Positions 1-49,874 are shown, numbered from the whole stretch's first letter. The stretch is DNA of 63,452 bases, filler included, from Lenisia limosa (GCA_001655205.1; 12 parts of 12 records of this genome joined end to end with filler, not necessarily neighbours in it), one strand, 5' to 3'. Notes: generated by a model not told the origin, from the sequence alone. Translations and numbers: made by a program.

Positions 1-151
1 ATTATATCAGTTTAAATAATAGGCTTTAGTTTTGCTTCCTCTCTTTGATGATTAGGTAGAAAAGGGGTGAAAGGGAATTGAAAGAAGAAGAAAGATAAAC
101 TAAAGAAGTGGGACTGATTCTTGCCCAGGAGCTTAATCCTCGTTTTCAATC

Positions 152-3100
152 ATGGGTAAGAGATAAGTGTACAATAATTAATTACTTTGTAGGTAAAAAG
201 ACGAAATTTGGAAAGTCGCGTCTTGATAAAGTATGACCAATTCTCTTGAGCCTCTCCGTTTTACTTCTTTAGTTTTATCATCTTGCAAAAGATCAAGGAT
301 ATCGTTCTCGAGCATCTTTCAAACTTATTCAGCTTAATAGAAAATTTGACTTCCTTTCAAATGCCAAGGCTTGCCTTGATCTTTGTGCTGCTCCTGGTGG
401 ATGGTTTGTTTGTCTTCTGCAGATGTAACAATAATAGGCTTCAAGTTGCAGCCAAATATATGCCTCTTTCTTCTATTATCGTTGGAGTAGATCTCTTTGC
501 TATCAGGTCAGACTCCTCTTACAAAATAGGCCTTCTCTGACTCTCTAGGCCTATCAAGAATGTCATTACCCTCAAACAGGATATTACTACTATTCAATGT
601 CGCCAAGCTATTAAAAGAGAACTCAAAACATACAAAGTGGATGTGTAGGCAGCCCTTAGTCCACTTGACAGTCCAGCGTACTTCATGATGGTGCACCCAA
701 TGTTGGTTCCTCCTGGGCTAAGGATGCGTACGGACAAGCTGAATTGACTCTTCACTCACTCAAGCTTGGTGTTGAATTCATGAACAAAGGAGGTTTGTTA
801 CTTTTTGGATCTGACCTTTCAGCTTGGTTTGTGACTAAGGTTTTCCGTTCAAAAGATTACAATGCTTTGATTTGGGTGTTCACCCAGCTCTTCGAGAAGG
901 TCGAAGCAACCAAGCCTGCTGCCTCAAGGTCTGCTTAAATGTCATTCTTATAACCTTCTAGAAACACGTCAGCAGAAATCTTTGTTGTTTGCCGAGGATT
1001 CTTAGCGCCCAAGAAGTTGGACCCTCGTCTCCTGGACCCTAAGACTGTCTTCAGCGACGACATCCCCGTGCATGAGGCGATGTCCAACAAGAGAGTATGA
1101 TCAATAAGCCTTTTAATGTTTGTAGCACGGACGAAAGGAGAGACCGAACCAGCTTGGATATGCTGATGATGCTGGTGTTCTTCTCTCAACTCAAGGAACG
1201 GTCAGTGCCCTTCTTGATGCGTCCAAGCCTGATGAGTATCTCTCAAGTTTGTCTTGATAGTGTTCGTTTCTTTGACTCACCTTTCAGGTGTTCAAAACAT
1301 TTCCTTTGATGAGGGTGCCAAAGAGTGAGCAAAAGGCTTCTGATTGATCTCTTTCTGTTCTTTAAATTAGCTTCTCTATTTACTCTTGATGATCATATCT
1401 TTAGTCTGGAGCTTCATCCTTTGACTACTCCCGAACTTCTTACTTGTTTCAAAGATACCCAGGTGAGGGCTGCAGCTTCAAGAATAACCCAAACTATTCT
1501 TTGCTTTTTTTTCTCCCTCAAACGCCATCCATCCTTAATTGTTTCTCCTCACATTGAATTTGTATTTTGATTGTTCAGGTTCTTGGAAAGGGTGACTTTA
1601 AAACTATTATCAAATGGGTGAAGAAGGTGAAGAGGAGTTTCAAGAAGCTCCAGGACGAGAAACATGGTGGGCTTGGTGTCTCAAGGTGCAAGAGTTACCA
1701 CTATCCAAGGGATCACAAGAATTAGAGCTTCACTTCGTTTTCAAAAAAGACTGAATTTTTCTATAGTTATATTTTGTTTTTGTTTTTCAGAGTGAAGCCC
1801 AATTAATAACTGTCCAGGCGTGCCTGAAGGAGAGGAAAAGGCAGATGATGAGTCAGGAGACGAAGAAGTGGAGGACGGAGATGAAGATGAAGAGAAGAGT
1901 GCAGCTCCGCATAAAGAGGTTAGAGTTGATCTGATCGGCTCTAACTCTTTGTTTCCACTGGCACAATATTGATGTTTTCTGGAGACAGTTTAAATGTTTC
2001 AGGAAAAGTCTCTGAAGGGAGAACTGGATGATCTGTTGACCACTCGTGCTGCGGAGGCAAAGAAGAAGCGCAGGCGGATGCGTGAAAAATTGGCGCAACA
2101 ACAAAGAAGAATCGATATGAAACTGGTAGGCCTTCAATAGTAATCCAATTTTCCTTTCACTCCGTTCGAATTTATACTCCCTTTCCTTGTTGTAATCACA
2201 TTCCTAGGACAACCCTGGTGATGAAATTGTCACTGCTGATGATGAGATGCTTTTCAGTGCTCGTTTACTCAAATCTAAATCGGTAAGAGGAGGCAAAGTT
2301 TTTTTCTTCGTGATTATCGGTCTAATAAACATTTCTTTTGTTTTACAGGCCAGATGGCCGGTTCAAGATAGAAACTTATAGTTTAGGATATTGAGAAGGT
2401 CTTGTCTGAGGACGCAATGGCCCATGTTGAATTTGAGTGAGCTTTGGGTGGCGATATGAATGTTTCCAGTTTTTGAATTTGGTTTTACTTTTCTTGAATA
2501 CGGTGTTTTCTTGACTGTTTTAACTTTACAGTGAGGACAAGGAGCCATTGATGCCACAACGGGAGTTTGTTGATGACGTTTACATGAGTGATGATGAGAT
2601 TGAAAGGGAGCGTCAAGGTGACCTCGAAGACGAAATCGACGCTGCCTACACTGAGTACAAGAGTGTGTTGGGTTTTACTGTTTCTAAATTATTACATGAC
2701 TACTATTCTTCAACCACAATATTTCTTTGACATCTTCTAGTGTTGTGCAACTGTCTTTTCTTATAATCCAGACCGTACTATGGGAAGGCTTGAAAGACAG
2801 AAGGCTGAGAGAGAAAACAAGAAAATCAAGCCCAAGGAGTGAGTGGCAATTTAATATTTCTGCAAATCATGCGCAAACTGCTAAATCTTATCCTAAACAA
2901 TATCCAGCGAGCTGAAATCAATGAATGAAGTCTTCGAGGAGGAAATCGACAAAATTGAGCAGAAGGCACCAGCCCCACTTGTTGAAGAGCTGGAGCATCT
3001 TGAGCCCCAGGTTTCCGATGATCACCGAGTTTCAATGTTCTTCTCAAGAGAAGGCTTCGACGATTTGATCGAGGTAAGAGAGCGTCATTTTCTCCTTTTA

Positions 3101-37054: not shown

Positions 37055-38416
37055 NNNNNNNNNNNNNNNNNNNNNNNNNNNNNNNNNNNNNNNNNNNNTT
37101 AATTAATTAANNNNNNNNNNNNNNNNNNNNNNNNNNNNNNNNNNNNNNNNNNNNTTTAAATTTTGTTGAAATAGCCGGGTTAAAGTGGAGAAAATAATAA
37201 TTTACGGAAATACGAAGAATTACGGGAATTCTGCGCGGTAGCATATATTATTTCCTGAACACAGATCACAGTCCAAAGCAAACTTGTCCTTCCTCGTCAA
37301 GGTCGTGAACAGGCCGATGACACTTTCCGGAAAAGCAGGTTATGTCACTGGCACCAGCTAAAAACGCCCTCTAGCCAGACACATTCACAACAATTACTGA
37401 TAATAGTTTTCTAACAGCAACGAGAAGACTGAGGGAACATCCTCGAAATTTGGGAATGGCATGGTAATACCAGAACGGAAAAATGGNNNNNNNNNNACCT
37501 TCCAACAAGATCTGGTGCTGATCTGTCTCAAATATTGAATTTCTATAAAAGCCTTACTGAGACATTTTTTAAACTTGTTTTTATAATTTTATTGTATGTA
37601 TGTAGTTTTTGGTTTAAATTTTGTTGAAATGGGTTAAAGTGGAGAAAATAATATTTTACGGAAATACGGATAATTTACGGGAATTCTGCGCGGTAGCATA
37701 TAGTATAGGTTTATTCTGAAGACCGATGGATTTGCAAAGGATATCATTCCTCATTTTATCGAATCCCACAGACCAGCCTATCTCCTAAGGACCCTGAGAC
37801 ATTGTCAATTTTTATTCGAAAGCCTCCGTTGACCTTCTTTCAGGCGATAACGTTGACCACAATGATGTTGGAAAGTAAGGAACCTTTGATTTCTTTGATA
37901 ACTATAGCGCAGTAGAGGAGATCTAGAATATGATTTTTTTATGACAATTCATACTTTAGGGCTACTATTTATCTTGACATTGTTGCATAGTCAAACCCCA
38001 ATTGTCACAGTCATAAAAAAAAGTATAGTTTTGGATCATGGGTGGGGATATTAACATTATCAGAAGCCCTTAATTCATTATATTCCTACCTTCATGAAGT
38101 GTCTTGTGAGATTTGTTCACCACCGTGTTGTGAGAAACTCCCCAGAANNNNNNNNNNAATAAAACTATAGTACTTGTATCCTCTAATTTTTAAGTTTCGA
38201 GACTTGCTCCCTCAGAAAAGGGATTCGGTAGCCCGAGCCACGGGAACTCCATCCTTTCCTTGAGCCTTAGACTTCCTCCCCTTTTTTAGTTGGCCCGACT
38301 ATTCTATATAAGACTCGCGGTTTTCCAATAAAAAAATGTAAGTAATTTACTGGAAAGAGTTTTCCACTTTCCAGTACCACAGATCATTCAAAAACAAAGG
38401 GGGTAAATGTATACGC

Positions 38417-39031
38417 TTATTTTTGAACAGGTAAAAAGAGTTTAAATTCAGGGGGTAATTCTTCTTCACTGTACAACCTGTCAGAGAAATAAATTCTCCT
38501 AATTCTACAATTCGCAAATAAATAGAAAGTAAAAACCATGAATTTGAACTCTTAAAGTTTCAATGTAATTTGTACCATAAGCACGACGAGTAAAATCACT
38601 TAAATTGAACTGTATCTGGTTCCATCCATCATCCAGCCTCATTGGCATTGTACAAATAAACGGTTTAACTCTTGTTTGACTCAACAGTTAACAAAACAAA
38701 AAACTTGATAATTCGAAGCACGAAATCTCCTTCTTACATTCTTATCATCCAAAACTTGGACTTCAAAACTAAAATACTTTTTTAGATTTTTAATAATCAT
38801 AACCAAAAACGGTAATTTAATACCCAGGGTCTTAGAGGAATCAGCAGGACAAGAAACAAAACAGGTTGAAACATTGTTACCTAACAGTTCAATCACCACT
38901 GATTGAATATCTTGGTCGGTAATTCTTTTGATATGTCCATTTTTAACCGTTTTATCCCAAAGTTGCAAAGGCTTTGAACCAACAGAATATAAAATTGAAA
39001 GAAACCCTGATTGAAAGGTATTCCTAAACAT
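38417..39031 (-). CDS. CFAP20: CFAP20/BUG22; exons 39031-38705, 38681-38537, 38514-38417 (189 aa) separated by two GT-TG micro-introns
   Basis: [27 protein letters not shown]...[10 protein letters not shown]|[48 protein letters not shown]|[32 protein letters not shown], colinear with the conserved CFAP20 sequence. Confidence 0.96.
38515..38536 (-). other. 22-nt non-canonical GT-TG intron (CFAP20 intron 2)
   Basis: Coding strand: CAT G|gtttttactttctatttatttg|CG AAT TGT. Removal restores the invariant QIHANCRIRR, and no AG solution is in frame. Confidence 0.88.
38682..38704 (-). other. 23-nt non-canonical GT-TG intron (CFAP20 intron 1)
   Basis: Coding strand: CAA|gttttttgttttgttaactgttg|AGT CAA ACA AGA. 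Removal restores the conserved YQ-S-x-TRVKP. Confidence 0.85.
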
Positions 39032-41622
39032 TCCTAATGACTTAATGATGAAGACAACAGGAAGCCAGTGATGAGGGGTACCAGGCATGATCCCTGATCT
39101 TTTATAATTTTCGCTGTTGTTTCCTGATGTAAATCTTTTTTTTTTTTTTTTTTTTTNNNNNNNNNNNNNNNNNNNNNNNNNNNNNNNNNNNNNNNNNNNN
39201 NNNNNNNNNNNNNNNNNTCTAACAATAATATAGAAGAAGAATTATCCAATTCACTGGCATTGAGAACAGATTGAGAACTCATCAATTTTTCGAAACATCA
39301 AACAAAAACAGACAGTCCTCAACAAATACTACTCTATACAGCAGCTACCACCACAGTGACTGATTGACTGACGACTGCTATCATCCAACTGCATGACTTT
39401 GGCATNNNNNNNNNNNNNNNNNNNNNNNNNNNNNNNNNNNTACTGGTTTTGTTGTTCCGTTATCTTTTCTTCGTTAAATGTTAAACTTTTGAATTTGCTG
39501 GTTTGCTCTATTGTTGTATTGTTGTACTTACTAAAGCGGTATGATATATTACTCATATTACTTTTATAATTACTAACTACTGAGTGAAAGCGACAAACAA
39601 TAACCCAACCCTTCAAAACATATCTAATTAGAAAACAATACAAAACAAAAGGGAGCACATTACGGCGAACAGAGCCAGCCAGCGGTAGATATGGCAAACT
39701 AGAGATGGTCAAAAAAAGCTTTTGAAAAACAACAGCGGTACCCGAAATATGGTCTGGCTTCCGATGCGCTTGATATGATTTTATCGTGTACTTGTTGTTC
39801 TTAATTCATTCCGGACACTATGTTACTCACATGGTTAACCCGGAGGACACCAATTTTTTCCGAAGCAGCGAACACTGGGGTGCTGTGATCAGGCAGGCGT
39901 CATCAAGCTGCGGTACCCATATATGGTCTGGCTTCAGCATGTGGGACCCAGGGTGACAGTGGAACCATAGGGTAGTAGAGCATGATGCAATGTGCGTTTT
40001 TTGGGACCAGAGGGAAGCCATATTGTGGTATTGATAATGTATCATATTATTTATTTGCCTTTACTTGGTTTCAAAATAAAACTGGAAGTATATTCCATCC
40101 TATCAGGAATTACCTCTGAGAAGCGAAGTCCATAACCCCCCTCACGTTGCAGCCGGTGAGGACCCTTGGATCAATGAGATCGACCAAGCCAGTCTCGAGT
40201 ACCATACTGCTGGGACTGGCCACTGCCCCCTTTATGGCGAAAACTCCTATCCTGAAACAAGCATTCCTGCTGTGAGGGGGTTTGAATATGTCTTATCTGG
40301 GACTGATGTGAAGTATGTTATCTTTTATTCTTGATGTTGGTTCACAAACAGTCTAAAAATCCACGAGTGATAACCTAATTTATTGCTGACCATTTGGAAT
40401 TCCGCTTTGTTGAATGTACTGCTCACCGACCTGTCCGAGCGCACTTGGATTACTTCAGGATATATTTTATGGAGAGGATGAACGCCCTTGTTACTTAGTA
40501 TGTTCATAGATATCACATCCTATATCCTCTGTTGAAAAAAAATATCCTCACAACCACAAATTTCAGTTACATAGCCATTATAGTTCCTGTGAATAGAACA
40601 GCAATGCGGCACCCAGAAGCAGAAGGGTCAAAAAAGTCCGCTTCTTACCAAGTAGTCTCTGCCATGTCGTTGCGAGAGGCGTTCAGACATGACGTTGTGA
40701 GATATGGGATACGAAGGAGATTTCGATGAAGAATATTATTGTAAGAGCGTGAGTGAAAATAAAACCATACTCCTGTTTTCTTCTTGAATAATGTTGTGCG
40801 TTAGAAAGTGTGGAATAAAATGAGGATAAAATACCTGGAAGGTGTACCTCCTAGAAAATACCTCAAAAAAACTAGGTTTTGCATGAAACTAGAGTATTGT
40901 GAAGCAGATACTCAAGAAAAGGGAATATGAATATAGTATAAAAAAAACCACCTTATTCACTTCCCAAAAAGGGTCGGCCCTCCCACATCGCTCTGATCGG
41001 CAGATTTAACTTCATTGCCACTCTTAGCAAAGAGGAGCTCAATGGCGGGGAAAAGCTCAGAAAGGAAGACCTCAAAGGTCTACGGATATCAGGAACAGCA
41101 AGAGTGTTATATCATATTACGAGTAAGTGGAGTGAAGCTAGGTGAAATTATTAATTTGAAAAGTGAGGCCAGAACAAAAAAAAATATATAATACTGTCTG
41201 AAGACGGAAGCAAGAAATGGCTCAATAGTTAATTGATTCTATTCTTGGATTTAAGGGAAAGAAAACGCATACCTCAACACATCTAGCCTTGTACTTCTCC
41301 TTGTCTTTCTTCTCCATCTTCTTACAGATCTTACGAACACCCTCCATATTTTCATTGATNNNNNNNNNNATTTGAATATGTCTTATCTGAGACTGATGTG
41401 AAGTATGTCATCTTTTATTCTTGATGTTGGTTCACAAACAGTCTAAAAGTCCATGAGTGATAACCTAATTTATTGTTGACCATTTGGAATTCCGCTTTGT
41501 TGCTCACCGACCCCTTAGTTCTTTCCGTGCCTTAAGGCCCAAAACGGCACCAACGTCTGGATCCGCTAGATCAGTTCTTAGCGTTATTTATATCGGTATA
41601 CTGTATTCTAGTATACGTATAC

Positions 41623-41700
41623 TATAGCAATGAGAAATAAAAAAATGGGGTTGGCCAAACCGTCCACACCATTATAATATTACTTCACCCAATCATTTGC
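41623..41700 (+). mobile_element. Repeat family 2, internally deleted copy
   Basis: TATAGCAATGAGAAATAA...TTGGCCAAACCGTCCACACCA...TTCACCCAATCATTTGC. Confidence 0.7.
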
Positions 41701-44700
41701 TTTTATTTATTATTGATTCAGTGTGATGCGACATCCAATAAATAAATGATGCCCTGTATACTGTATGCTCAAGAAATTTGAACCAGTATTTTATATATAC
41801 ACCATTGTTTGGTCAGTTATTGTTTCGTTGTTTCTGCCTATTCAGAGTCCAATCAGAGTATGGGTGTGAATTTGCAAGAATTCAAGGCGGATTGATTGAT
41901 TGATTGAGATGTTAATGTTCAGTTCGGAGAGTTCAAGTTCATTGGGTTCATTAATCATCTGAACATCTAAACCTTGCTAGATTTTAAGATTTCTTGATTG
42001 AAATAAATTGCTGTGAACCACAGTGAAACAACCGTGAAAAAAATAATCCCCCGAGATGATGAGATACCGATGCCAATATCCAATCCAATACGATCCTCGC
42101 CATCTGGCCAAGGCCGCCTTGATCCTGGCTGGCAAGATTCAAGAACCTTAGATTATAGATGGTGCTTGCTGTCCATCCGCAAAATACTTTGTGTGGATGT
42201 TCTCTGTGACAAACCACTCAGAAGAAAGCGTTATCATTTATTCAAGAGGAATTCTTTCAATTCCTTTTTCCTTAGTTGAAGCGGAAAGAGGCCCCAAACC
42301 GTGAATTCCACCCAACAAAACAACCTCCGCCCGCGGAGTTTCATTTTAGTGAAAACTCCAATAAGCTTGTTTTAATTTAAATACCTTAATTATATGTATA
42401 CATAGTAAATATAATAGTATAAATATATTTATTTTCGACTATATAGACGTAATTTGTTTTCACTAAATTTGACTTTGCTTTTCTTGCTAACTTGGGAGTC
42501 GCGCGGCGCTTCCACACTTTGGAATCAATCAGAATATTGTTGTCTGAAATAAAGCTTGACTCAAAATTTGTGTTTGGACAGCACAGCCACCTCCAGGAGA
42601 AGGGACGATTTGGTTTTCTGCTGATGAGGCAACCCTCCAAGCTGTCATGTGAAAACAAATGACTGAAACAATTAATTGCTGATGGGTAAACATACGAATT
42701 GGGGGTAAGTGGTGGGTTATGTCAATTGTTACTCTGTCCATGTGCTTTTCCCTTATTATATTTGCAACTCTCTTGATTATTACAATCAAAGCCGTTTGTT
42801 TAGAGCTGTAACCCATTCTTCACCTCCAAACATTGGTCTGTGTTCTTCCAAGATTCACCACCACCACAAATAATGAAGTTGAATTAGCTGTGTTTTGTTC
42901 TTGTCCTAGTGTCCATGTCTGCCTTTCATTTACACCGCCCACCCAGACAGGCAGAATGAACAGATACGACTCGATTAGTGTGGCATCTACAAACCAAGGT
43001 TGGAGAGGCCAACACAACAATGCAGTGACTTCATAATTACGAACCTGTCTTAAGCAAAAACAGCTTATTTGTTTTATTCTAACGTGATTCCTGTTGATAC
43101 ACAAGGTCGTGACTCGGGAAGGGTGCATCAATCTGATTTGGCTAGCGTTCTCCAAAGTACTGAGCAGTGAGTGGGTAACCAATAATCACCTCTGATGGCT
43201 TAACAATGACCAAAGGCCTGTGAAGATTTGACGGAAATCCATCTTGCCTTTTTCTTATTTCCGAACTGATATGTCCCGAAATAACAGCAGCCTAACAACA
43301 CTGTTCCTTCAAGTTTCTGATCAGCTGTAGAATCGAAAAGAGCGTGGAAATAGGACCGAATGCTGACACAGCATCAAAGCTCTTCCTCAACATCTTCAAA
43401 GACCCCATCCTTGAAAATGACTTCAGGGCTTACCACTGGGTATGTTCATTTGTATATGACTTTCTAAAGAGTATAATCGGGATTTTGTTGTCAATCGCGT
43501 ATACACTCCTAAAGACATCGATTGTATTTGTTAATTGCCATGAAAACACTATTCATTTCTTCTTATTATTATTATTCATGAAGTAACATTTTCAGAAGCA
43601 AAAAGGCCCCACCGTTTTAGCAGGATGCAGAGTTGGTGGCTGGACTTTACTTGCCGCCACCTTTCCAATTCTACTGCGAAGAGACTATCTGGGTTGGCAA
43701 TAATAACCTGTGGTAATAGGTTTTTTCATGTTTGTTTGAATATCCCCACATAGTATATCATTTGTCTGTTAACACATTAAGGGTTTTTTGTCCAAGTCAT
43801 GGCACCCCTTCTTCTGATAGTATCACCATCCATCATGAACCACTCAAAATATTGTAAGTTATAAATTGGTTCCTCAAAGAAAAGAAAGTAATAGAATATT
43901 GTTACACTTTTCGTTTGTCATCGAAACTTAAGGACTATTTACCCACAGATTCTTTAAACTCACACCACAGTCCAGCTGCACTACGGCCAATTAACGTCGT
44001 TCTCCCTCTGTTTCCACTTTGTACTAGGCGTCATGGTCAGAAGCCGGCTCAAAGGCTCAGAGGAAATCTCCCTTCTCTGGTTTGTTGTAGGATTAGGACT
44101 TCTGGTACATTGGAAGAAGGATATTCTGTAGAAAAGTCTTTTCTGTGCATAACTGTAACGGTCATCTGTCACAATCTAGGGCTCAACTGTTGATCGTTCT
44201 CATGTTCATTGGTCCTATGATCTTCAGCTCCCTCTTTACCGAGTCATTTCTGACCGCCGTCTTCATACCGACGTCAAATATTATATTTATGATTTACTTC
44301 AGTTGGGGGTTTTATTCATATTGCTTTCATGAAGGTTTTTTTACAGTATAATTCAGTACTGTGATTGTGATTATACATATAATTATGTAAATGTAGGAAA
44401 GAGATTAATATGAATATTATCATATGATAAATTATAATATATCATATAATAGTATGATACATCATCAAGGTAAATAATTAAATTAAAATTCCTTAATGAC
44501 TTGTAGAATATGATGACACCATTTGGGGTGAGAGTAACATCGGTTTTGGCCTCATGAACTTCCTCTTTGCCTTTGTGTTCATGTTGGAGGGGATTGTCTT
44601 TATTCTAAACCGTTGAACAATCCAATCTACAGCATTCCTTTCATCCTTACGCTTTATTCAACGGTTTTGAATATTGTCATATTTTAGTTTTGTTTTCTTC

Positions 44701-45479: not shown

Positions 45480-48400
45480 ATCTCCTTTCTAAAGGTCTGA
45501 ATACCCTTGGTTTGGCGGCATCTAGACATATTTACTTCTCAGGTTCAATGGGATCTCCTTTGCCATCTCCAAATGTACCAGGGAAAGTCAGAAACGACAC
45601 CTTCAAAGCGCTTCCTGTATGGAATCACATTCATTCTTTCGTACTTCTTGTGTCGCACCTTGAATAACGTAAACAGGTCATAGTTCCTAAACCCAAAACA
45701 AGTCCTGATGGTAAGATTTGAACGTTTTACTATGAACTGCCCAAGACCCTTTTTGAATTTAATATCAACAAGACTCCATATGCAATATCTTCTTGTTCAT
45801 TTATTCTTATCACTTGAAGATTCTAACGTGATATTGGACTAAAATGTAGGAACTGGACCGCGTAAACATCAAAGGCGAATGTCAATGGGAGTGATACCCC
45901 TGTTTTCGATAAAACAGTCAGTAATGGGCTCCCCAATTGTAAGTTGAGGAGAAAGGGATTCTTCTATGTGCATTAGTGTCTTTGATTGACCATTCCTATA
46001 GGTTCAGTACGATGAAGAATCAGGTCACTCCACAGTTAGAACAGGAGCGTTAGTGGGGCACATTGAACAGATAGTGTAGCAGTCTAAATTTGACACATTA
46101 GTATCTCGATTATTGAGAAAGATGAAGACAGGGGCATGACGCCTCAAGTTCAAGAACCAACCCTAAAACACTCGCTGGAAATCAACAAATTGATTCATGA
46201 GAATTCAAACTTGTCGTTTCAGGAGCATAACCAGCGGGGATTCCCAGAGCCGGTATGAATGGTTTGAAATCTTGTGATGTGTTTGTTAACAGTTTCTCAT
46301 TTTCTACAATTATAACCAAACAGCTTGAAAATATTATGGCGTACAGTTGCTTCTCCGAACCTTTTTTGCAACTGTAAGGCCGATTTTTGGTCCAAGCGAC
46401 ATTTGGGGTTCTCATATACTAGAAGCCCAGACGTGACGCTCAGTATGAGCGGGCAGATTGACGCGTTTTCTCAAGTCAACATGTTCCATTTGAACAACAA
46501 AATAGAAGCTAACATCTTGGTTTTCATTGTTGGCTGGGCAATTGCAATTGAAAAAGTTATAACTCTATATGTAGAGCAAGAGAATAAATATTCTGTTATA
46601 TTTATTAAATGTCAACATTACGGAGATCTTTGTGACCTCTTCAGGGTATGGAATGTCTTGACCGACTGAACCTCTTTGAATATTGCGAACTCAAAAGAGA
46701 CGACATGGCAAGGCTTCTGACCAAAGCCTCCAACTGTTACCACAACTTGCCATACCACAATGAGTGTCACGCTGCCGACGTGTGCTTCTCAGTCACTGAA
46801 ATGATCCTCAATTCCCCGATTCTCAACTATCAGCTTAGCTGCTGGGACAGTGGGAACGGATGGTCTGTATACCCAATTTCTTATGCAATTGTCTTTCTGC
46901 CATTTGATGTTTTTTGAAATTGTGTTTTGAAATTGTATTTTGAAATTGTATTTTGAAATTGTGTACTATATGATATTTTACCTCTCAGAATTTGCGGCCG
47001 TTTTAGCAGGAATTTGCCATGACTTCGCTCATCCAGGAGTGAATAACAACTTTCTCAACGCAATTTTGCATCCACTATGTAGGTAGAGATCAAAATAGTT
47101 TGTGTTATTTATTCAATGTACTCATAATAGTCTCCCTCAGTTATCAACACAGCAACTCTCTAAATAATCCATATCTCTTCAGTATCTAATGAATAACATG
47201 TAGCTATGGCCTATAACGACCGATCTGTATTGGAAAACTTTCATGCAAGCGGGTCATGGCACCACCTGGTGGCGGCGACTGGGGGCCTGGCTGAAATGAT
47301 CGAATGTGACAATCTAGTACGTTTTGGAGATTTTTGCGTATAATCTCAGATATTTTTTTTTGATATCGTAATATTATCCGAAATAAGCAATTGAATATCA
47401 AATCCTATTCAAAACTGTCCACATGTTCCAGTCATCACCAATGGTGGAGGGCTTCGGCTAGATAATACCTTGTTATCACATTTCAACATACATATATGTC
47501 TGACCTTCAGAGTGCCGTTCGCACAACGTTTATTGATTTGATCCTTGCAACAGGTGGGGTTATAAGATGGGTTCTTATGATAGAGGGGAGAAAACCTAGT
47601 GTTCGTTTTTGACTTGTCTAGACGTCTCAACTCATTTTGAATTTATGGCTAATTTTCAAAGTAGAATTGAAACCGGTGAGGGGTCTGGCTATCAGATGTG
47701 AAATTCATTGTTGTACTTATTCATGGGACTCTTACCATCTGCTCATTGTTCAGGCATTGAACCGAATTCACGGTCAGATCAGAAGCTGGTGGGATAGAAG
47801 TATCAATACTATCATGACACAGATGTACAAATCATATCATATTCTTTGATGTATTATATCCACAGTAACCTACCTGACTCTGTAAAGCGCTCACCACTAC
47901 CAATTCAGCTCATGAGGCTCATGATAAAAATCTGCGACATCTCACACACCCTCAAAGACCCTGAAGTCTCACTTGACTGGTCAAAAGTGGGCTGGGAAGA
48001 AAACGGAAGAGCGTCGCTAGCTGGCAAACAAACGTGTAATGTTCTAGCGAGTCAATGAGGAGTTCTACGGGCAAGGAGACCTGGAGTACAGCCTCGGACT
48101 TCCCGTCTCGGCCTTTATGAACCGCGAACTTGCCAACTTCAAGAAGTCCCAGATCGGCTTCATCTCATATGTGGCCAAGCCCGTCATTGAGGTTGGCTCT
48201 GGTGTTTATGGTTTTAGAAATACGAGGATGTAATAGAGTATAAGGGCAATAGTAATCAATTTTCTTTTACAAACACGGCTTATTTGTTCCATAATTAGTG
48301 TGTATTGCAGTTTAACCTTTTCAGCTCTGGGAGCAAGGAACTGGAGAAAGTCTCTACACCAAGAGGTGGGAACTCAGATCCAATAAAAACAGGGTTTCAT

Positions 48401-48534
48401 AAAACGCCTACCCCCCCCCCCCCNNNNNNNNNNNNNNNNNNNNNNNNNNNNNNNNNNNNNNNNNNNNNNNNNNNNNNNNNNNNNNNNNNNNNNNNCATCT
48501 TGCAGAAGACTACTGGAAAGACTATGCCGAGTAG
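45480..48534 (+). CDS. Class I cyclic-nucleotide phosphodiesterase with long N-terminal region (5' end unresolved)
   Basis: YHNLPYHNECHAADV; AGICHDFAHPGVNNNFL; YNDRSVLENFHA; DLILAT; MIKICDISHTLK; EEFYGQGDLEYSLGLPVS; SQIGFISYVAKP; ends LAEDYWKDYAE*. Confidence 0.9.
46912..46963 (+). repeat. 13-bp tandem repeat (TTTTGAAATTGTR x4) in a PDE intron
   Basis: tttttgaaattgtgttttgaaattgtattttgaaattgtattttgaaattgtg. Confidence 0.8.
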
Positions 48535-48916: not shown

Positions 48917-49874
48917 TTAGTCGCAAGAGGCACATCCGTGGCAGCCACTGCGGGGGGGGGGGGGNNNNNNNNNNNNNNNNNNNNNNNNNNNNNNNNNNNN
49001 NNNNNNNNNNNNNNNNNNNNNNNNNNNNNNNNNNNNNNNNNNNNNNNNNNNNNNNNNNNNNNNNNNNNNNNNNNNNNNNAAGTTGCTGTAAGATATTATT
49101 ACGAAAAAAACAAAATGTTGAAGTTCGTATTCGACGACTAAATTCTGCATCACATTCCTTTAGCATAAGTCACAATGTTACACCTTCCTTTCCCAATGTT
49201 GTAAATTGAACCAAATTCAACCTTTTCAACTTTTTATCAGCTTATCTCGCTCCAAGATCCCATCCTCCAACCAGGCCTGGCACTCAATCACTGAGCCAGC
49301 AGGGAGATCCTTGCGAGGCACACGGCAAACACATGTCGTTTCAAAGTTGGTACGGTTCTTTTGAATACACTGCAGACAACAGAGCTTCTCATACCCGGTC
49401 TAGTGCGTGAGGCTTTCAACATGACGCTTGTTTGGAAGAACATGGTAAAATAGGAGGTGATCAAACTACGGGGAAAGAGAGGGGAATTGAAATTGATGAT
49501 TCTTACCTTCTTCCACTTGGCAATAAGGCCAGCATCTGCCCATTTCTCCTTGAGGCACCACTCGTAGAGCTCTCTGGAGATCTCCTTTTTCTTCAAAAGT
49601 TATATTTAGACAAAACCAAGGCTTACCACATAGAACATCTCGTAAACAAAGCGTGATCTCTGGTGGTTGATTCTGAAAATAGGCCAAATGGCTTCGACCT
49701 TCCGCTTTCCCTCATGAGGATCGTTCTCAGCTGAAAATAGCGTTAACCTGAGTTCTATTGCAACTATAATTCCTCACCTTCTCTCATCTTGTCTTCAAAT
49801 TCAAGAAGAGTTGGCTCAATGAGCTCAAACCCTTCAGGAGGAGCTTTCTTTCTGTTAGTTCTAACCTTTGGCAT
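48917..49874 (-). CDS. BUD31: BUD31/G10 spliceosomal protein
   Basis: [59 protein letters not shown]...[12 protein letters not shown]|[13 protein letters not shown]...CVCRVP...ECQAC|GCHGCASCD*. Introns are GT-AG. Confidence 0.95.

Follow-up and report, generated by a model that had tools for sequence, protein, structure and literature searches.

Two inserts of 22 and 23 nt with GT..TG borders are removed from CFAP20 RNA in a Lenisia limosa assembly

The CFAP20 gene and its two inserts

The DNA analysed here, called the window below, is a stretch of 63,452 nucleotides from Lenisia limosa (GCA_001655205.1), made of 12 parts of 12 records of that genome joined end to end with filler. Its subject is CFAP20, a structural gene of the cilium that lies on the minus strand (Table 1). 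The frame of this gene is interrupted by two very short inserts, here called introns 1 and 2, both of which start with GTTTTT, end with TTG and consist of T to 65–68%. Neither length is a multiple of 3, and direct reading shows that retaining either insert leads to an early stop. That their removal restores the frame had been proposed in an earlier sequence-only reading of the window, and the DNA and RNA contigs described below agree with it.

The three exons match the Pfam profile CFA20_dom at positions 1–109, 111–157 and 159–184 (E-values 1e-48, 1.5e-19 and 3.6e-09, respectively). The two profile positions left out, 110 and 158, correspond to residues at the junctions, the Ser and the Ala of the split codon, so that zero residues are gained or lost by the removal of the inserts. 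The spliced protein is 90% identical to its stramenopile ortholog, 89% to that of a fungus and 88% to that of a fly. With values so alike across eukaryotes, the gene gives no taxonomic placement, and an Atlas search with a BUD31 exon yielded noise only. When close relatives were sought to see whether the TG ends are conserved, the best CFAP20 match anywhere was about 90% identical; most of the 80 metagenome loci lack introns or belong to unrelated organisms. In the public assembly a prokaryote-style gene call gives a 135-aa open reading frame comprising exon 1 and seven codons of intron 1.

Table 1. Features of the CFAP20 scaffold and introns of other CFAP20 loci. Positions are those of the window except in rows that name another locus; slashes mark splice sites.
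Feature	Position	Strand	Description
CFAP20 gene, ATG to TAA	38417..39031	minus	3 exons; 570-nt coding sequence; 189 aa
CFAP20 exon 1	38705..39031	minus	327 nt; Met1–Gln109; ATG at 39031; 5′ part of open reading frame P0001
CFAP20 intron 1	38682..38704	minus	23 nt, GTTTTTTGTTTTGTTAACTGTTG; phase 0; GT..TG
CFAP20 exon 2	38537..38681	minus	145 nt; Ser110 to first base of Ala158 codon
CFAP20 intron 2	38515..38536	minus	22 nt, GTTTTTACTTTCTATTTATTTG; phase 1; GT..TG or GG..TT
CFAP20 exon 3	38417..38514	minus	98 nt; last codons CAA AAA TAA
Highly expressed neighbor of CFAP20	40986..41359	minus	RNA-confirmed 193-nt GT..AG intron (41272..41080); GTGGGA donor at 40986
Class I cyclic-nucleotide phosphodiesterase (PDE), catalytic region	46645..48402	plus	10-exon model; 9 GT..AG introns of 61–139 nt
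BUD31/G10 splicing factor	49226..49874	minus	4 exons; 3 GT..AG introns (47, 39 and 107 nt)
Locus L082, intron after Gln109	1585-1620		Phase 0; CAG/GTAAGT...TTTCCAG/AGA; 36 nt; GT-AG
Locus L085, intron after Gln109	545-579		Phase 0; CAG/GTAAGC...CTCTCAG/AGA; 35 nt; GT-AG
Locus L084, intron after Gln109			Phase 0; CAG/GCGCGT...GCGCAG/AGC; ~150 nt; GC-AG; GC-rich genome
Locus L057, tiny CFAP20 intron	124-138		15 nt
Locus L075, tiny CFAP20 introns	1123-1143, 1337-1357		21 nt each
Locus L068, tiny CFAP20 intron	964-996		33 nt

Two public sequencing runs of the same 2016 study, X1 and X2, which derive from differing samples (S1 and S2), were compared with positions 37155–43100. X2 is polyA “metatranscriptomic” RNA-seq. 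X1 has no recorded library type, and we take it to be genomic DNA because its depth is even (about 36–47) over transcribed and silent parts of the scaffold. The evidence from both consists of assembled contigs, not raw reads, and the Logan contigs used leave out rare variants and would not show minor isoforms. The X1 contig that covers the gene (931 nt, 38169–39099, depth 42.7) keeps both inserts and has 0 differences from the window; its depth is like that of its neighbors (36–47), and an insert-free form has depth 0. In the X2 contig (631 nt, 38396–39071, depth 486), 22 nt are missing at 38515 and 23 nt at 38682, these being its only gaps. It shows 0 substitutions relative to the locus, also in the untranslated regions, of which it covers 40 nt on the 5′ side and 21 nt on the 3′ side. 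Both inserts are thus transcribed and then precisely cut out of the RNA, and the junctions lie exactly where the sequence-only reading had put them.

An independent SPAdes contig, L001 (ENA analysis ERZ3820729, NODE_4502; 3699 nt, coverage 44), was retrieved by an exact match to the 135-aa open reading frame mentioned above. It matches the window at 100% identity from 39156 to 38158 (999 nt), has both inserts and continues ungapped into 41354..39441. It had been allowed beforehand that the DNA might in truth read AG at the insert ends; at the contig level X1 and L001 both read TG, and because they read these bases alike an assembly error is excluded. RNA contigs that are spliced at an AG or that retain the inserts, the other outcomes envisaged, are absent from the assembled X2 contigs.

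Reading of the flanks shows that the borders of insert 1 cannot be moved by even one base, so that GT..TG is the only solution: a shift of one base in either direction would alter the mRNA, and the RNA contig shows no mismatch. For insert 2 a shift by one G is possible, so that its borders are GT..TG or GG..TT. Thus intron 1 begins unambiguously with GT and intron 2 with GT, or with GG if shifted by 1 nt, and both lack the 3′ terminal AG of U2-type introns, ending in TG in two DNA assemblies, with RNA junctions that rule out TT..AG and GT..AG borders. Several other placements were considered and rejected. GT..AG introns of 25 nt (insert 1) and 32 nt (insert 2) shift the frame, as had been claimed, and the RNA contig disagrees with them; a TT..AG intron at insert 1 would indeed put Val in place of the Ser and is ruled out by the RNA sequence; and a 29-nt intron running from a GT 7 nt farther on to an AG would leave VFF standing for SQTRV.

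Introns of neighboring genes and of other CFAP20 genes

About 15 ordinary GT..AG introns lie on the CFAP20 scaffold. They are 39–193 nt long, with GTRRG donors (including GTGGGA, GTAGGT, GTACGT, GTGAGG and GTAAGA) and YAG acceptors. The intron of the highly expressed neighbor, which is linked to CFAP20 on L001, is seen in RNA as a junction from 41079 to 41273 (CT..AC on the plus strand, RNA depth 306.7). A plus-strand RNA junction from 40271 to 41519 also has GT..AG borders, its length being uncertain owing to a local duplication. The exons of the BUD31 gene fall at positions 1–32, 34–66, 68–95 and 96–137 of the Pfam profile. The PDE model, which was built from the DNA, gives a 290-aa open frame with colinear PDEase_I matches, and its nine predicted donors are GTGGGA, GTAGGT, GTACGT, GTGGAG, GTGGGG, GTGAGG, GTGGGA, GTGGGC and GTTGGC.

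The sequence-only reading had interpreted the two CFAP20 introns as a sign of systematically altered 3′ splice-site recognition. The introns of the PDE and BUD31 genes and those confirmed by RNA, all on the same scaffold, speak against this, as every one is GT..AG. They indicate that the spliceosome here normally uses AG, and it is in other respects conventional. What stands of that interpretation is that both inserts (2/2) end in TG and are indeed removed from the RNA; an organism-wide change of the spliceosome does not stand. Among about 17 introns in this region, the two tiny ones depart from the local norm three times over, in length, in the donor GTTTTT and in the acceptor TTG.

The surroundings have some further peculiarities. 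In BUD31 the last exon reaches profile position 137 of 146, and the usual C-terminal HCGCxGC zinc motif is missing. About 100 nt downstream of that exon, CAT TGT GAC TTA TGC TAA (49177..49160, minus strand) encodes HCDLC and a stop, and joining this to the ...IECQ of BUD31 would require a 99-nt intron (49276..49178) with GC..AA ends or shifted forms of these; the arrangement may reflect chance or another non-AG acceptor. To keep its frame the PDE model requires a conjectural 12-nt micro-exon, TCATCACCAATG (47432–47443), between two GT..AG introns. Intron 1 of the same model holds, at 46909–46965, a tandem repeat of a TTTTGAAATTGT(G/A)-type unit, which is the source of one chance GTTTTT...TTG match. 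In the neighbor gene the RNA contig of depth 306.7 carries at 41299/41300 an additional 18 in-frame nt (plus-strand CTCGAGGCCAGCATTGCT) that are missing from the DNA contig and the window, and DNA depth is 64.8 there against a local level of about 43. The difference probably stems from a second allele or copy of the gene.

We also note some irregularities of assembly. A block of 651 nt (37497–38147) sits between two 10-N gaps, and L001 and an X1 contig leave it out, joining 37484 to 38158 with a few other bases between; the block is probably a misplaced scaffold piece. On either side of the gap at 41360 lies a local duplication of about 130–160 nt with 96% identity (40283–40440 and 41371–41502), beside which 41533–41731 is a high-copy repeat (DNA word depth about 2978 vs about 40 elsewhere). 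Homopolymers T20 (39137–39156) and C13 (48411–48423) stand at contig ends next to N gaps and are typical assembly break points.

In other CFAP20 genes, the open reading frames P0003, P0005, P0006, P0053, P0091, P0101 and P0109 run after ...RFRASNYQ into a non-homologous continuation, whose first residue after Gln109 is Ala in P0006 and Val (from GT) in all the others. At this very site three of those loci, L082, L084 and L085, have an intron, so insert 1 occupies an old and widely shared spliceosomal intron position. In a small sample of intron-bearing CFAP20 loci, no intron was found at His157/Ala158, the site of insert 2; their introns are instead at about residues 153, 161 and 131–134. The tiny CFAP20 introns of L057, L075, L068, L082 and L085, all GT-AG, come from uncultured eukaryotes, of which L075 is probably a ciliate with a reassigned code because it has in-frame TAA/TAG codons. 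At least two loci share the intron position after Gly18, and the same holds for the one after Asn88.

Probable splicing at UG and competing explanations

We consider it probable that the inserts are degenerate, ultra-short, U-rich spliceosomal introns of the U2 type that are ligated at UG. This reading is favored by their removal from the RNA, by the intron position that insert 1 shares with other eukaryotes, and by intron-like traits of both: the GT start, the richness in U, lengths that are not multiples of 3, branch-like motifs and the lack of a stable fold. The 5′ cut would be made at GU, and the branch adenosine would lie 4–8 nt before the 3′ end, in UUAAC of intron 1 and in CUAU or UUAU of intron 2. 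In the DNA these are motif matches: TTAAC indeed lies 5 nt short of the end of insert 1, as the sequence-only reading had pointed out, and has an A 6 nt from the 3′ end, and the CTAT or TTAT of intron 2 has an A 8 or 4 nt from it. The exons would then be joined at the proximal UG and not at an AG, with U replacing the usual A at position –2, while the last G would retain its known contact with the first G, made in the catalytic step. On this account intron 1 would have shrunk from the ancient intron of that site.

In the exon that follows, an out-of-frame AG comes 2 nt after intron 1 (CTGTTG/AG) and 10 nt after intron 2 (TTTG/CGAATTGTAG), and it may serve in early recognition of the 3′ splice site, as has been proposed for human TG-AG tandems. 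Ligation at these AGs would shift the frame and lead to nonsense-mediated decay; with their frame broken, such products would be unstable and unseen in contigs, leaving the UG-ligated mRNA as the sole abundant species. In human U2-dependent introns, ligation at TG needs an AG within 28 nt (Szafranski et al. 2007, Genome Biol 8:R154, PMC2374985), and those authors suggested that the AG is needed at an early step and that TG can be selected later. The human motifs include TTG,GAG/ and TTGTTG,AAG/, and TG is there an alternative, usually minor site and “never the sole 3′ splice site” (PMC2374985). The CFAP20 introns are like these tandems in their GT..TG borders, in the T before TG and in the AG within 28 nt. 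They are unlike them in that the human introns are long, whereas ours have 22–23 nt, poor donors and a partner AG that is out of frame, and in that the TG product is here the productive one and the sole form seen in the RNA contigs.

Introns of similar size are known elsewhere. Those of Paramecium have 20–30 nt and those of the Bigelowiella nucleomorph 18–21 nt. Lengths of 15–16 nt are given in the literature for Stentor and Blepharisma, and the median is 22–27 nt in dicyemids and myxobolid myxozoans (PMC13644364, PMC6543705, PMC6736024). The CFAP20 introns share with such introns the size range, removal at the RNA level, the GT start, reduced motifs and a branch-like A near the 3′ end. The known ones, in contrast, end in AG and dominate their genomes, whereas those of CFAP20 end in TG and form a small minority of the introns on the scaffold. 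Dicyemids, myxozoans, Mesodinium and oxymonads were considered from the literature as possible sources; their intron profiles do not fit, and TG ends are reported for none of them.

Several observations weigh against U2-type splicing at UG. The GTTTTT donors fit neither the local GTRRG pattern nor pairing with U1 and U6, and normal introns in the piece have at least 39 nt vs 22–23 nt here. Only the TG product is found, without an AG-ligated form, while human TG acceptors are never sole or productive ones. The tiny CFAP20 introns elsewhere (L057, L075 twice, L068, L082 and L085; 15–36 nt) end in AG in 6/6 cases, so that a TG end is no general property of tiny introns. The downstream AGs lend weak support, because chance alone would put an AG within 10 nt about half the time, and the whole case consists of two introns (n = 2) of one gene seen at the contig level.

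It is possible, but in our judgment unlikely, that the two introns instead represent a separate class of their own: tiny, U-rich GUUUUU...UUG introns that recur in many genes of the genome and are recognized differently from normal introns, for example through a fixed length that is measured, by a route that dispenses with U1 or U2AF35, or by a variant or minor-like small nuclear ribonucleoprotein. The likeness of the two (GTTTTT...TTG, 22–23 nt, rich in T, 2/2) speaks for such a class, as do donors sharply unlike the roughly 15 neighboring GTRRG donors. The pattern GTTTTT-N12-16-TTG also occurs 7 times in the 14-kb piece vs 1.5 times in composition shuffles, a control that disregards natural T-runs. 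Against it, the cases are two only, and the 5 other matches to the motif have no recognizable coding frame, those within 37155–43100 showing little or no RNA depth. A scan with Rfam found no small nuclear RNA or other Rfam family in the piece. The 5′ ends (GTTTTTT and GTTTTTA) are also unlike the RTATCCTT of U12-type (minor) introns, and only the TTAAC of intron 1 resembles the branch box TCCTTAAC; a U12-type assignment was rejected. Were the class real, two intron grammars would exist in one nucleus, UG being the constitutive and sole productive acceptor of one class beside GU..AG introns of 40–200 nt, a picture that we likewise hold to be doubtful.

Removal by an endonuclease and an RNA ligase, whether IRE1/RtcB, the tRNA-splicing endonuclease acting on a bulge-helix-bulge or a machinery of the euglenid type, is improbable. 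Introns spliced by IRE1/RtcB have 20–26 nt (XBP1 26 or 23 nt, bZIP60 23 nt, also HAC1), so that the size fits, and the non-AG 3′ end, the poor donor and the restored frame are features that would be expected of it. Its substrates, however, carry two stem-loops with CNG/NNGN loops that are cut after G, and they encode stress transcription factors, whereas CFAP20 encodes a structural component of the cilium, its inserts lack the twin 7-nt CNGNNGN loops, and at its 5′ end insert 1 is cut after an A. Euglenid nonconventional introns likewise have non-GT-AG borders and coexist with conventional introns in one nuclear genome, as the inserts do here; they are usually longer and are defined by pairing of the intron ends, and nothing indicates that this organism is a euglenid. 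Folding of the inserts, alone and with flanks of 30 nt, revealed no stable structure, and no stem-loop, bulge-helix-bulge or end pairing is present. The minimum free energy is 0 kcal/mol for the inserts alone; with flanks it is –10.6 and –8.0 kcal/mol, which does not improve on shuffled sequence (z = +0.66 and +0.78). The GT at the start of both inserts and the site of insert 1, one that spliceosomal introns occupy in other genes, also speak against this route. The non-spliceosomal excision offered as an alternative by the sequence-only reading is therefore disfavored.

We think it likewise improbable that the difference lies in the DNA, the RNA having come from cells, nuclei or a strain without the inserts through programmed elimination of the kind that removes ciliate internally eliminated sequences (IESs), a precise intron-loss allele or an insert-free paralog. 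DNA and RNA do derive from different samples, and the 18 extra nt at 41299 suggest that at least one locus has another allele or copy. The insert-free form is nevertheless wanting in the DNA, where the insert-bearing contig has the depth of its flanks, and the RNA matches the locus with 0 mismatches, parts of the untranslated regions included. The insert-bearing CFAP20 is otherwise a perfectly conserved open gene and must be expressed by way of insert removal. Ciliate IESs too are short and AT-rich, break up coding sequence and are missing from mRNA, but they are removed from DNA and have TA or pointer borders, whereas the CFAP20 inserts are at full DNA depth and their borders share at most 1 nt, with no TA or pointer. 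The piece shows no gene-dense organization of the ciliate type and no alternative genetic code, tables 6, 10 and 4 giving no longer frames in it. An IES or a nucleomorph origin is ruled out by the DNA depth and the linkage to genes with introns of 39–193 nt.

An artefact (assembly or k-mer error, template switching by reverse transcriptase or a contaminating organism) is the least probable explanation, for although the evidence consists of contigs and the scaffold has gaps and the mis-joined block at 37497–38147 that is missing from L001, two independent DNA assemblies agree base for base, RNA depth is 486, DNA depth is uniform over CFAP20 and its neighbors, template switching requires direct repeats where only 0–1 nt are present, and both deletions restore, with zero residues lost, a frame 88–90% identical to CFAP20 elsewhere.

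Implications for splicing and gene finding

Few rules of splicing are as firm as the 3′ AG of U2-type introns. In this CFAP20 a UG acceptor gives, as far as the RNA contigs show, the only abundant and only productive mRNA of a near-invariant cilium gene, and it does so twice in one gene. Full-text searches of the literature for GT-TG or GU-UG introns found only the human surveys, and a genome paper outside these searches may describe them. On present evidence, what is new is that introns of spliceosomal look are at once ultra-short and productively spliced at TG, while the other introns of the genome are normal.

Should the two introns be isolated oddities, they would be a well-documented curiosity. 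If splicing at UG is true, such genes would be split into false pseudogenes by gene finders and spliced aligners that insist on AG or set a lower limit to intron length, and CFAP20 would provide a natural substrate for the choice of the second-step site when an intron is nearly too short for the spliceosome.

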